From contig NC_068991.1 in NCBI RefSeq assembly GCF_001194135.2, forward strand, positions 28,036,057 through 28,100,056: a stretch of DNA of 64,000 nucleotides, given 5' to 3'. This document shows positions 5,789 to 33,442 of the stretch, one piece after another. The stretch comes from Octopus bimaculoides (Eukaryota). The stretch's first letter is position 1. Each line of letters opens with the position of its first letter. The position numbers were made by a program, and so were the translations under genes. Below the pieces are notes generated by a model. That model saw nothing but the letters and a program-made list of their open reading frames with translations. It was not told the origin of the DNA and made no database searches.

Positions 5789-5925
5789 GGAAATTTAATG
5801 TCGGACAAAATTTGGCTCTTGGACACCTAAACTGGTCACATGCTGTAAGCGGCTGGTATGGTGAAATAAAAGATTTCACCTATAACAAGCAAAATGTATT
5901 TTATAAAGTAGGACATTACACACAG
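5789..5925 (+). CDS. Copy A CAP exon xKFNVGQNLALGHLNWSHAVSGWYGEIKDFTYNKQNVFYKVGHYTQ
   Basis: tctttag acceptor, gtaaga donor, 137 nt; contains G(Q/E)NL, WxxE and the CAP signature GHYTQ. Confidence 0.95.
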
Positions 5926-6644
5926 GTAAGAATAATCTATTTTATACATCCAAACTTATTAAAATGTCTGAGTATTGTGGAAAACGAATAGTTGTGTTCT
6001 AGATAAAAAAGATGTCACAATTTAGTAAAAGATAAAAAGAGAACAGACCAGAAGTTAGTAAGAAATTCTAGAAGAAAATGACTTTATAGTTTTTCAGGAT
6101 CAAATATTTTTATTCTGTGAAATCTGATTTGTAATTAGAATTTTCAGTATTTCTAAAGTGATTTTTCCAACTTATATACATATTGTTGTTATTATGTTAA
6201 ACTGTTGTGTGTCCAAATTTGGCCAGATGTGTTTTTTTTTTCTCAATATTTATTTTTGCTTGCAATAGCAGGTTGTTTTCTTCAAACTATCATATCTCCA
6301 GCTGTTTCAGCTGCCAAGATATCAAAAATTGTCAAACTGCAGTACAACAGTTTTGCTATGGAATGGTGAAACTATTATTTTTTTTTTTTTCTGAAAAGGC
6401 TACGTTTTGGACTAACAACACTTATGCACAGTAGCAACATTATACAACATATTGACACACAAGAAATTCTCATAGATTTAGACATATTTTACCTTCATAA
6501 AGAAAGATCTAATGAAGTATATCAATGTAAATGTGGTGAACATGATGAAAGAGAGTATGTGGTAAGTTAGAGTACTCTAGACTAAACTGTATGTATTACT
6601 TGGATGCTATATATAAAGTTTTAAGTATATTTTCATTTTTACAG

Positions 6645-6733
6645 CTGGTCTGGGCAAGCTCTGCTGCTATTGGTTGTGGATTCGCTTATTGCAAAGGCGT
6701 AGGAAGACTGTATGCATGTAACTATGGTCCAGG
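6645..6733 (+). CDS. Copy A CAP exon LVWASSAAIGCGFAYCKGVGRLYACNYGPG
   Basis: tttacag acceptor, gtaagt donor, 89 nt; completes GHYTQ-LVW and CNYGPxGN CAP signatures in frame. Confidence 0.95.
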
Positions 6734-31094: not shown

Positions 31095-31196
31095 ATTGTA
31101 AAGGAAGGGTTTGTCGGAATTGGAGTACAAGGATTGGTGATGGTTGTAAGTGTAAATGTTTGAAGAGCCGGATCTATCATGGACCACAATGTAGAA
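31095..31196 (+). CDS. Copy B EGF-like exon DCKGRVCRNWSTRIGDGCKCKCLKSRIYHGPQCR
   Basis: cttttag/gtaaat, 102 nt, six Cys conserved with copy A. Confidence 0.9.
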
Positions 31197-33317
31197 GTAA
31201 ATATATTTTATCTTTTATCTTTTCCTTTTTGTCTTTTCCTCTCTCTCTCTCTCTTTCTCTCTCTCGCTCTCTTTCTCACTCACTTTCCTTCTCTCTCTCC
31301 CTCTCTCGCTCTCTCTCTCTCTCTCTCTTTCTCTCTCTCATCCTCCTCTGTACTATGTAAAGCAAGACTGGAGGATCAATCAGTTACCCAATCCCATATT
31401 TGCTTCTTGTCAAGCCAAGAAAGGCAAGATGTCTAAGTAGTGGCCACCCTCTGACAGATTTATGGTAGAGCTTGAAGTAGTGGTGACCCGCTGGACTACA
31501 TCCCTGCTCATTGCTATTAGGACAGAGGTGCTATCCACAAGTGCGAGCCCGTGAGTCAGAACAGCTGTTCCAGCATGTCTCCTTCACCATCCCCGGGGCA
31601 ATGCCTCTCGGATTTTGTCCACCAGGAGCATGAAGCAGACTGACAAATCATTTTAGTTATAGTTGTTTTATTGACATTAAGTACAAGACACCTGTTTCTA
31701 TCTCTGTTACACTCTAAAATTTTATCATCTGACACAAGATCACCTCCTCCAATGCCCCCTCCCTTCTCAAAGGATCTTTCTCTTGCAAGTTACTTGGTGA
31801 CCCAGCCAGTGCTGATGCCACTTCAAAAGCGTCCAGTCCACACTGTAATGTGGTTATCATTTGGAAGGGCAACCATCCAACTGTAAAATCCATGCCAAAA
31901 CTAATCTTGCCATGTAAAAAGCACTCAGTCGTGTCTGCTGAGAGGTTGGTGCTAGGAAGGGCATCCAGCCATAAAAGCCATGCCAAAACAGACACAGAAG
32001 TTTGGTGCATTCTTCTGCCTGGCCAGCTTCTGTCAAATTGCCCAACCCATGCCAGCATGGAAGGCAGAAATTAAACAATAATGATGGTGATGAAAACAGA
32101 ATAAAGATACTTGAATGATATAGGAATATATGAAAGACAGCTAATACCAAAAGCTATTGCTAACTAATGAACTACAGGTAATCAACATTTATATTAGCTA
32201 TAATATCAGATTACCTGATATAGTTCATGTATATCAGGTAACCTAACTGCCTCAGATTACGTAAATGGTTGTCTGACAAACTCACAATAATAATTTAGCT
32301 GTCTACCAAAAACAACTCTTAGATATCTCTGGCATTTAATATACTGAAGCAATATCTTTGGTCCCTCATATATACTACAGTAGGAGGGATGGCAGTGGTG
32401 ATGGTGGTGGTGGTGGTGGTGGTGGTGGTGGTGGTGGTGATGGTGGGGTTATTATAATTTCTTAGAAAAAATAAAAAAGTCACCAGAAATTTTGTTATTA
32501 TACTCTACTGATAAGTCCCAATATCTTAGAATGGATATTTAAAGCAAAACATATCTAATCATCATCATCATCATCAGTACCACTTGTCACTTTTATTGTC
32601 ACTATTTTAATGTGCTTTTCTTTGCCATTGTAGACTGCATAGATGCTAGTATGATGCTTAATACTATTTCAATTAAGCATCCATTAAGCAAAACATCTTA
32701 AGAACTGTCTCTACTAAAACTTCTCACATCTTCTTCACTCTTCTCTTACCTATGTCATCATCTTCTACCAGTGCACACTACATTTTGTATACAAGTCATT
32801 GACTAGAACTAGAACATTTGTCTCTGCTGCTTACATCAGCTGATGTCTTCAATGTCCAGATAGTCTCAACACAGCAGTGCACCATTTTTCATGTGGATTA
32901 ATGTTACACATTCCATACACCATGCATGTGTCATTTCTTTCCAACCTCTGTAATAGATCTTCTACAGTCACTGTCCATGTCCCTATTCCATAACATTTGG
33001 TATCACACATCTCGCACCACCATTATGCAGTCTAACTCTACACAAAGAATCAGAATGAACACGTTCACCCAACTTCTTTGTCACCTTCCTTATACTAACA
33101 ACTATTCTTTCATCAAATCCAGCTCTTTTGTTATTTATGTCACATATGCATTTATCACACCTAAAGGGACTCTACCTACATTTTTTTTTTTTTTGTATTT
33201 CTCGCTGTTTACATTATATGTACATTGAACTTTCTCACTTAATTTGAAATAATACCACTTCTGAGATGAAAGTGAGATTTTGCTTTCCCCATGAAACAAA
33301 TTCTTGATTTTTTACAG

Positions 33318-33442
33318 TGAACTGTGCTCGAGGCAAAGAAAATGCTCATTGTGGTGGATATTTCACAAAAGAAGATTGTATTGAGTATTCCAATGTTCCA
33401 TTCATATGTCCTGAGACGTGTAACCTGTGTCCAAGTGAGTAA
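33318..33442 (+). CDS. Copy B ShKT exon [41 protein letters not shown]
   Basis: tttacag acceptor, six Cys, TAA 33440-33442, AATAAA 33852-33857 after the gap. Confidence 0.9.

Follow-up and report, generated by a model that had tools for sequence, protein, structure and literature searches.

The window analysed here is a 64,000-nucleotide stretch of Octopus bimaculoides DNA (NC_068991.1, positions 28,036,057 to 28,100,056; coordinates below are in window numbering, continued past its right end where needed), and it lies within a chromosomal tandem array of genes for secreted CAP-family proteins. Self-comparison revealed a tandem, same-strand segmental duplication, with copy A at ~1713-15302 and copy B at ~21993-34251, which align as ten collinear blocks of 70-98% identity. 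In each gene of the pair, the encoded CAP domain precedes two six-Cys modules. Exons were identified by direct reading of frames, acceptors and donors, and upstream exons by tblastn of CAP homologues (Table 1). Five exons, E1 to E5, are comparable between the copies; the upstream CAP exon E0 falls outside the comparison because its copy B counterpart lies inside a gap (22378-22597), and the first exons of copy A are located to the left of the window. Since a tblastn search of the window plus the next 18 kb detected no further E1-E5 copies, A and B are the only comparable pair. E5 of copy A ends in a good donor (CCAA/GTGAGT); if E5 is read through, a TAA codon follows two codons on in both copies (14822-14824 in copy A), with an AATAAA at 14903-14908 in copy A, ~80 nt past the stop.

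The five copy B exons match an NCBI protein named 'cysteine-rich venom protein Mr30-like [Octopus bimaculoides]', placed on chromosome record CM046611.1 (GCA_001194135.2), where the corresponding locus (L001; L001 position = window position - 17002) has the window sequence with identical gaps. This gene model, which occupies 27003-33434 of copy B, appears to be truncated as well as chimeric. Its first codon is an internal Met of E1, because E0 lies in the gap and the upstream exons were ignored; past E5 the model continues into an exon rich in Ser/Thr (48542-48616, 15 kb downstream) and then into exons at 68388-72472 (L001 51386-55470) that look like the N-terminal part of the CAP unit that follows. 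Copy A is apparently unannotated in O. bimaculoides, though intact over E1-E5: its protein (5789-14824) was not found in a collection of 5.8 billion proteins, where the best match, at 64% identity, was to copy B. With one model truncated and chimeric and the other gene not found in the protein collection, annotation of the CAP array is currently unreliable. A CAP model of 553 amino acids also overlaps the whole of locus L001.

Table 1. Features of the two gene copies and of the non-coding DNA around them. LOW and HIGH denote tracts of low and high divergence between copies in the segmentation described in the text; fractions are nucleotide differences over aligned positions.
Feature	Position	Strand	Basis, counterpart or remark
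LOW tracts around copy A E0	1811-2097 (2/287), 2704-3096 (3/393)	+	segmentation; copy B 22091-22377, 22759-23152
Copy A E0, upstream CAP exon (YWDKDLEYVAQKWAENCQFKHDN...)	2110-2180	+	tblastn, acceptor and frame read; cut by gap 2181-2703
HIGH non-coding, old repeat present in both copies	3619-4505	+	137/835 (16.4%); copy B 23298-24144
LOW tract	5410-5664	+	4/255; copy B 26593-26848
Copy A E1, 137 nt, CAP, GQNL...GHYTQ	5789-5925	+	Pfam CAP match
LOW tract, last 21 nt of E1 and start of intron 1	5905-6208	+	7/303; copy B 27096-27399
HIGH part of intron 1	6209-6644	+	~15%, exon-like divergence
Copy A E2, 89 nt, CAP, VWA..GCG..CNYGP	6645-6733	+	
LOW tract around E3, broken only by the 20-nt E3 island	10203-10679	+	6/189 and 5/267
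Copy A E3, 65 nt, CAP end and hinge	10386-10450	+	
Copy A intron 3, 232 nt	10451-10682	+	copy B 30863-31094
Copy A E4, 102 nt, six-Cys module, EGF-like look	10683-10784	+	EGF not called by Pfam
Copy A-specific insertion in intron 4	12733-14029	+	transposase-remnant look by eye; no significant Pfam match
Copy A E5, 117 nt, six-Cys module, ShKT-like look	14700-14816	+	
LOW tract downstream of E5	14861-15302	+	9/442; copy B 33810-34251
Copy B N-terminal exon (KNCPRKYHKIANHTACLPKSSLVLKS)	18191-18269	+	tblastn, direct reading
Copy B exon, first CAP motif (MTDKDRKLILDLHNKYRTEVNPPACDMLKM)	19568-19659	+	tblastn, direct reading
Copy B E1, 137 nt	26980-27116	+	matches NCBI model
Copy B E2, 89 nt	27823-27911	+	
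Copy B-specific insertion in intron 2	28240-29000	+	Mos1/mariner HTH_48 remnant at 28175-28345 (Pfam, 7e-7)
Copy B E3, 65 nt	30798-30862	+	
Copy B E4, 102 nt	31095-31196	+	
Copy B E5, 117 nt	33318-33434	+	TAA 33440-33442; gap begins 33444

Exons E1 to E3 encode the C-terminal half of the CAP domain (Pfam PF00188), detected with E-values of 6.2e-09 in copy A (37 bits, cut-off 21.1) and 1.4e-10 in copy B; with upstream exons either missing or outside the window, the match is limited to profile positions 64-117. Sequence matches in the PDB reached 1e-19 and comprised snake CRISPs, Ves v 5, GLIPR1 and PR-1. Among the CAP signatures sought (HNxxR, G[EQ]N, GHYTQ.VW and CNY.P.GN), copy A carries GQNL, GHYTQLVW and CNYGPGGN, and HNKYR is encoded by the copy B exon at 19568-19659. 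Copy B has GKNM in place of GQNL (Gln to Lys) and Asp instead of the invariant Glu of WY.E (Glu25), two changes that could alter the CAP cavity. The Cys residues of the E4 and E5 modules are invariant across 36 lophotrochozoan homologues, and Colubraria CreCAP-ShK4 and CreCAP-ShK6 were found among the homologues at ~1e-22. An earlier note on this DNA had described an EGF-like module, and E5 is here read as ShKT-like; Pfam returned no ShK, Crisp or EGF match at E<=1 in the C-terminal modules of either copy. An AlphaFold model of the partial copy A protein, built on a 36-sequence alignment, had a mean predicted local distance difference test (pLDDT) score of 55.8, too poor for a fold search.

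Over E1-E5, copies A and B differ at 85 of 510 nucleotides (16.7%; 25/137, 14/89, 10/65, 18/102 and 18/117 from E1 to E5) and at 60 of 169 amino acids (18, 11, 6, 13 and 12), with only six codons that differ purely synonymously. All these counts reproduce exactly those of the earlier note, whose statement that Cys residues and splice sites are kept without stops was also borne out: 16/16 Cys, AG/GT at all ten exon boundaries, and neither stops nor indels. Differences are distributed 38/31/16 over the three codon positions. The ratio of transitions to transversions is 36:44 in the exons and 315:198 in the non-coding DNA of the whole duplication, and the transversion excess in exons fits replacement-driven change.

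The non-coding DNA of the two copies turned out to be a mosaic. Overall it differs at 513 of 5808 aligned positions (8.8%), and segmentation with a two-state hidden Markov model divided it into LOW and HIGH tracts. Eleven LOW tracts of 42-442 nt together show 48/2634 differences (1.8%) and make up ~45% of aligned non-coding DNA; the HIGH tracts, which make up ~55%, show 465/3174 (14.65%; Jukes-Cantor distance 0.163). The clustering of identical tracts between these tandem paralogues is statistically supported by the segmentation and also by run lengths, as no run in 2000 permutations was longer than 153 nt and the real alignment has four perfectly identical ones of 156-177 nt. Intron 3 belongs to the LOW class (5/232, 2.2%, the same count as in the earlier note), and the flanks of E1, E3, E4 and E5 are 0-8% divergent. 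Intron 1 differs at 70/705 positions (9.9%), with ~3% divergence over the initial ~290 nt and ~15% over the other ~430 nt. A fair neutral marker is provided by the HIGH tract at 3619-4505, since it contains an old repeat common to both copies. The earlier description of adjacent introns as ~2-3% divergent therefore holds for intron 3 and for the LOW class, but not for intron 1 or for the larger part of the non-coding DNA; introns as a whole are not much more conserved than exons (55% at 14.65% vs exons at 16.7%).

Two constraint-based explanations of the LOW tracts were considered and rejected. Purifying selection on intronic elements is a poor main cause for tracts that represent 45% of non-coding DNA, are 98-99% identical beside DNA that is 85% identical, and extend past the gene on both its upstream and its downstream side. 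Constraint on splice signals would cover ~20-30 nt of the flanks, not the whole 232-nt intron.

When set against this mosaic, exons were significantly more divergent than all non-coding DNA (p=9e-8) and than their own 50-nt flanks (23/405; p=2e-7), but did not differ from the HIGH tracts (p=0.25). Five random non-coding windows of exon-matched lengths accumulated at least 85 differences in 0.5% of trials (P=0.005), and all five reached at least 15% divergence with P=0.0007. Single exons are not extreme, 7-26% of length-matched random non-coding windows being equally divergent or more. Exons are thus enriched in the divergent class.

The draft is gappy, with 15 N runs across the window; all ten exons and their immediate flanks are free of gaps. 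Two gaps in intron 2 of copy A (7563-7895 and 8770-9570) coincide with microsatellites. The 10-N gap at 30167-30176 is bordered on both sides by an exact 47-nt duplication (30120-30223), and because these flanks are identical the gap is read as a spurious scaffolding artefact in a continuous sequence with one 47-nt copy. Some gap lengths are apparently mis-estimated: 366 N follow E5 in copy B (33444-33809) where copy A has 35 nt (14826-14860), and the same seems to apply to 22378-22758 in copy B compared with 2098-2703 in copy A. The scaffold order is supported because A and B are collinear on both sides of the gaps.

These defects raise the question of whether the LOW tracts derive from collapsed repeats, bubble-popping or gap-filling, the genes being in truth ~15% divergent throughout. 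The most identical tracts, of 0.7-0.8% divergence, end exactly at gaps in one of the copies (2097/22377, 2704; 33443, 33810), the 47-nt overlap reveals imperfect scaffolding, and the chromosome record carries the same gaps. Nevertheless, seven LOW tracts lie inside contigs, with HIGH DNA on both sides and two to seven copy-specific differences each; moreover, collapse hides a few per cent and cannot turn 15% into 1-3%, and tract sizes of 140-440 bp are typical of gene conversion. An assembly origin of the LOW tracts consequently seems quite improbable to us.

Rates of synonymous and non-synonymous change (dS and dN) were estimated for the pair over E1-E5. The NG86 method gave S=104.5, N=402.5, Sd=11 and Nd=74, hence dS=0.113, dN=0.211 and omega (dN/dS)=1.86, with a bootstrap 95% confidence interval of 1.05-3.84 and a one-sided Fisher p of 0.036. 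Omega was 2.18 by LWL85, 2.15 by YN00 and 1.83 by maximum likelihood in Biopython; our own pairwise GY94 implementation yielded 1.87 with F3x4 codon frequencies (twice the log-likelihood difference, 2dlnL=3.06, p=0.08 two-sided), 2.21 with F1x4 (p=0.025) and 2.78 with equal frequencies (p=0.003). The point estimate therefore lies above 1 under every estimator, with borderline significance, and the value at or below 1 that the earlier note had named as contrary to its reading was not obtained. Synonymous changes are informative about age: the 11 synonymous differences compare with 1.9 expected at LOW divergence (P=3e-6) and 16 at HIGH divergence (P=0.10), and even if only the six purely synonymous codons are counted the LOW expectation is exceeded (P=0.013). 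Since exon synonymous divergence (pS 10.5%, far above the 1.8% class) fits the HIGH and not the LOW tracts, the exons appear to be as old as the HIGH DNA, and dN (0.21) is ~1.3 times the divergence of the latter.

A further view of age came from Octopus vulgaris. An exhaustive protein search retrieved the O. vulgaris model CAI9730330.1, which spans 287 kb and fuses six tandem CAP units (U1 to U6) of the syntenic array; the other multi-unit matches of a representative search were unrelated CAP repeat proteins, except for one that is unit-6-like, and the searches retrieved no second close model from an octopus. Over the 169 residues of E1-E5, copy A differs from U4 at 16 amino acids and from U3 at 29 (U3 from U4 at 25), and copy B differs from A, U3 and U4 at 60, 61 and 62, respectively. 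The neighbour-joining tree was (((A,U4),U3),B),(U2,U5). By these protein distances copy A is the orthologue of O. vulgaris unit 4, and copy B is placed as a separate, older lineage that branches before the group of A, unit 3 and unit 4. The 57 N-terminal residues of copy B are equidistant from the two clades (15-17 differences from U3/U4, 17 from U2/U5), sharing 7 states only with U2/U5 and 10 only with U3/U4, with 7 unique. The protein tree thus places the A/B split before the separation of O. bimaculoides and O. vulgaris, and the 1.8% tracts would then be secondary, young overlays, best explained by gene conversion, and not a neutral baseline.

These results bear directly on a model in the spirit of the earlier note, which had proposed positive selection: a recent duplication with a neutral divergence of 2-3%, after which exons changed some eight times as fast, either under strong positive selection or by hypermutation aimed at exons, as described for conotoxin and snake-venom PLA2 genes. 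The divergence of intron 3 and of the exon flanks is as such a model would predict, and so is an overall omega above 1. Also in its favour is the 613-bp stretch that contains E3 and E4, in which the non-coding part differs at 11/445 positions (2.5%) whereas non-synonymous sites of the two exons differ at 25.5/130 (p=2e-10), with only 2.5 synonymous differences. In addition, nine differences fall within 20 nt of E3 (10393-10412), all of them non-synonymous and B-derived, replacing the family-typical SAYS.NR by AHDTYNL in copy B. The two exons thus agree with the earlier description of ~20% non-synonymous divergence within a 2.5% intron. Several observations speak against the young-duplication model as a whole, however: the larger share of alignable non-coding DNA is at 14.65%, including the shared old repeat at 16.4%; synonymous differences are ~6 times the LOW expectation; copy A is nearer to O. 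vulgaris unit 4 than to copy B, whose N-terminal exons represent a lineage of their own; each copy has its own insertions; and changes derived in A were not passed to B. Indeed, at positions 82, 102 and 125 in E3/E4 copy A carries derived residues when compared with its orthologue, and copy B the ancestral ones, so that E3 and E4 were not swept along with their 2.5% introns. We regard the young-duplication model as unlikely, and the contrast of 17% with 2-3% does not stand as a measure of exon acceleration, given that half of the non-coding DNA is exon-like, that exon pS is far above LOW divergence and dN only ~1.3 times HIGH divergence, and that the protein tree puts the A/B split before that of the species. 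The contrast probably reflects mostly homogenised introns, together with moderate, borderline-significant positive selection.

A further rival assumes a young duplication after which ectopic gene conversion transferred the divergent tracts, with the exons among them, to copy B from a third and more distant member of the array; it appears very improbable. Copy B shares ~10 residues in E1-E5, besides the 7 of 57 N-terminal ones, with the U2/U5 clade only, and further units of the array lie downstream; on the other hand, ~37 residues of copy B are absent from all six O. vulgaris units, a third E1-E5 copy was not detected in the region searched, and retention from the ancestor accounts equally well for the states held in common with U2/U5.

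Copy B evolves about two-fold faster than copy A: in relative-rate tests with U2 or U5 as outgroup, unique changes numbered 11-13 in A and 26 in B (p=0.014 and 0.037), and ~37-47 of the 60 replacements fall on the B lineage. Such asymmetry might mean that copy B is decaying or functionally released, its replacements reflecting relaxed constraint and not adaptation. Consistent with this, copy B has changed not only the family-invariant Glu25 but also Gly106 and Gly107, the evidence for omega above 1 is borderline, its NCBI model is defective, and protein searches returned no transcript-derived sequence that matches A or B exactly or nearly so. However, its 510 nt contain no stops, frameshifts or indels, its splice sites are intact, and the chance that 60 random hits would spare all 16 Cys is 6e-4. 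The A/B differences fall on alignment columns that vary within the family (mean entropy 2.31 vs 1.39 bits, p=1e-6), and copy B deviates no more than other family members do, departing from 5 of 50 strongly conserved columns (others, 4-12 of 54). Relaxation on one branch combined with constraint on the other also predicts a pairwise omega below 1, not ~1.9. Relaxed constraint as the source of the replacements is accordingly judged doubtful at best, and copy B is probably not decaying. As to the positive selection proposed in the earlier note, the omega estimates, the retained Cys scaffold and conserved columns, and the concentration of change at variable positions agree with it, but its statistical significance is borderline.

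The explanation that we favour, with a probability of roughly 60%, combines old paralogy, patchy interlocus gene conversion of non-coding DNA and diversifying selection on exons. The A/B duplication would have taken place before the species split, and unconverted DNA would accordingly be ~15-17% divergent. Short tracts of 140-440 bp, mostly intronic or flanking, would since have been copied between A and B by interlocus gene conversion, leaving ~45% of the alignable non-coding DNA at 0.7-3% divergence. The five comparable exons would have escaped this homogenisation, keeping their old synonymous divergence (dS ~0.11) and gaining an excess of amino-acid replacements (dN ~0.21, omega ~1.9), mostly on the B lineage and at family-variable positions. 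Diversifying selection may both drive exon divergence and remove conversion tracts that enter exons, after which the diverged exons may themselves block heteroduplex extension. Selection and heteroduplex block together would make the exons stand out as islands between young introns.

Several points weigh against this combination of conversion and selection. Nine of the ten exon boundaries adjoin low-divergence flanks, which is rare under random conversion alone (P~0.01), so that the conversion model needs selection or a mismatch barrier in addition. GC-biased conversion received no support, GC content being 31.3% in LOW and 36.1% in HIGH tracts. The outgroup comparison covered proteins, and any dating of the HIGH tracts relative to speciation is correspondingly tentative. 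The test of omega above 1 is borderline and varies with the codon-frequency model, and the assembly is a gappy, short-read one in which several of the most identical tracts stop at gaps. Synonymous divergence of E3 and E4 (2.5/35) is not significantly above that of the local intron, and differences are packed more densely in the E3 island (9/20 nt) than in the 15% background, which leaves room for a real local burst after conversion. The density of this island suggests a local adaptive burst or a complex mutation. The stronger claim, that the exon islands, above all E3 and E4 (18/102 in a 2.5% intron), are real post-homogenisation adaptive bursts in copy B of the conotoxin or PLA2 kind, strikes us as improbable.

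If conversion and diversifying selection are confirmed at this locus, A and B would be a clean invertebrate case of conversion erasing intron divergence while selection preserves and extends exon divergence. The pair also calls for caution, in that an 'exons faster than introns' pattern between paralogues can stem from intron homogenisation and not from exon acceleration; neutral divergence is properly gauged from synonymous sites and from non-coding DNA that escaped conversion, and not from whichever intron is most alike. As regards cephalopods, the analysis singles out copy B as a fast-evolving predicted secreted protein. Rapidly evolving CAP proteins elsewhere also act in reproduction and immunity. 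The products of A and B may have a venom, defence or other role, and it is only the family names that point to venom and the posterior salivary gland. Literature searches for this locus or for CAP expression in O. bimaculoides gave general statements only, for instance that octopus salivary glands contain CAP proteins (PMC12607849), and turned up nothing on the expression of A or B.

Other features were observed in and around the array. First-exon motifs of the type 'CP.KYH.I.NHTAC' recur at 18191-18269, 72356-72472 (L001 55354-55470) and 81898-82017 (L001 64896-65015) and mark more CAP units downstream, the motif at ~81.9 kb being near-identical to the start of O. vulgaris unit 6; between the downstream motifs, the E1-E5 body of a unit-5-like gene was not found. 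An interspersed repeat of ~1 kb occurs at least four times in the window, its copies being 65-81% identical (3303-4579, 23298-24218, 53329-54200 on the minus strand, and 62146-63686). Long open frames with poly-Asn/Tyr runs and a reverse-transcriptase-like segment (...VRQGCSLSPLL...) at 175-1300 suggest a retroelement fragment, a region in which Pfam gave no match at E<=0.01. Large inverted repeats were seen as palindromic self-matches at 43193-43727 (535 nt, 88%) and 30243-30549 (307 nt, 81%).

The pattern shown by A and B is already known from other gene families. In the primate red/green opsin and human RHD/RHCE pairs, introns are reportedly homogenised by conversion while selection keeps exon differences. 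The octopus genes, too, are tandem paralogues in which introns resemble each other more closely than certain exons do, with divergence peaks on selected exons and tracts of a few hundred bp. They differ in that the islands comprise every one of the five comparable exons instead of one or two, and in that omega exceeds 1 across the whole coding region and not at a few spectral-tuning or antigenic sites. Snake-venom PLA2 and conotoxin genes are likewise said to combine hypervariable exons with conserved introns. Common to these and to the octopus pair are a secreted Cys-rich protein with a fixed Cys scaffold, dN above dS, membership of a tandem multigene family, and exon dS above the divergence of the conserved introns. 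However, in the PLA2 and conotoxin genes introns are conserved throughout, whereas in the octopus pair this is true of only ~45% of the non-coding DNA, the remainder being exon-like; the dN excess is modest in the octopus genes (~1.3 times HIGH non-coding divergence).

Similar in layout are the Mr30/Tex31-type CRISPs of Conus and the CAP-ShK salivary proteins of Colubraria (Cumia) reticulata, which consist of a CAP domain and C-terminal Cys-rich modules (PMC4460706, PMC6409789). Copies A and B share this succession of a CAP domain and Cys-rich modules, and the NCBI name of copy B is 'Mr30-like', but identity is only 33-49%, and Pfam makes no ShK or EGF call in octopus. CAP proteins of the coleoid posterior salivary gland (Ruder et al. 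2013, as cited in PMC4619613) belong to the same superfamily and animal group as A and B. According to Fig 5 of PMC4619613, which includes coleoid CAP among the plotted families, venom genes of ancient lineages are mostly under negative selection. The pairwise omega of ~1.9 for A and B contrasts with the purifying selection shown there, and adaptive bursts in E3 and E4, if true, would contradict the view of coleoid venom-type genes as evolving mainly under purifying selection.

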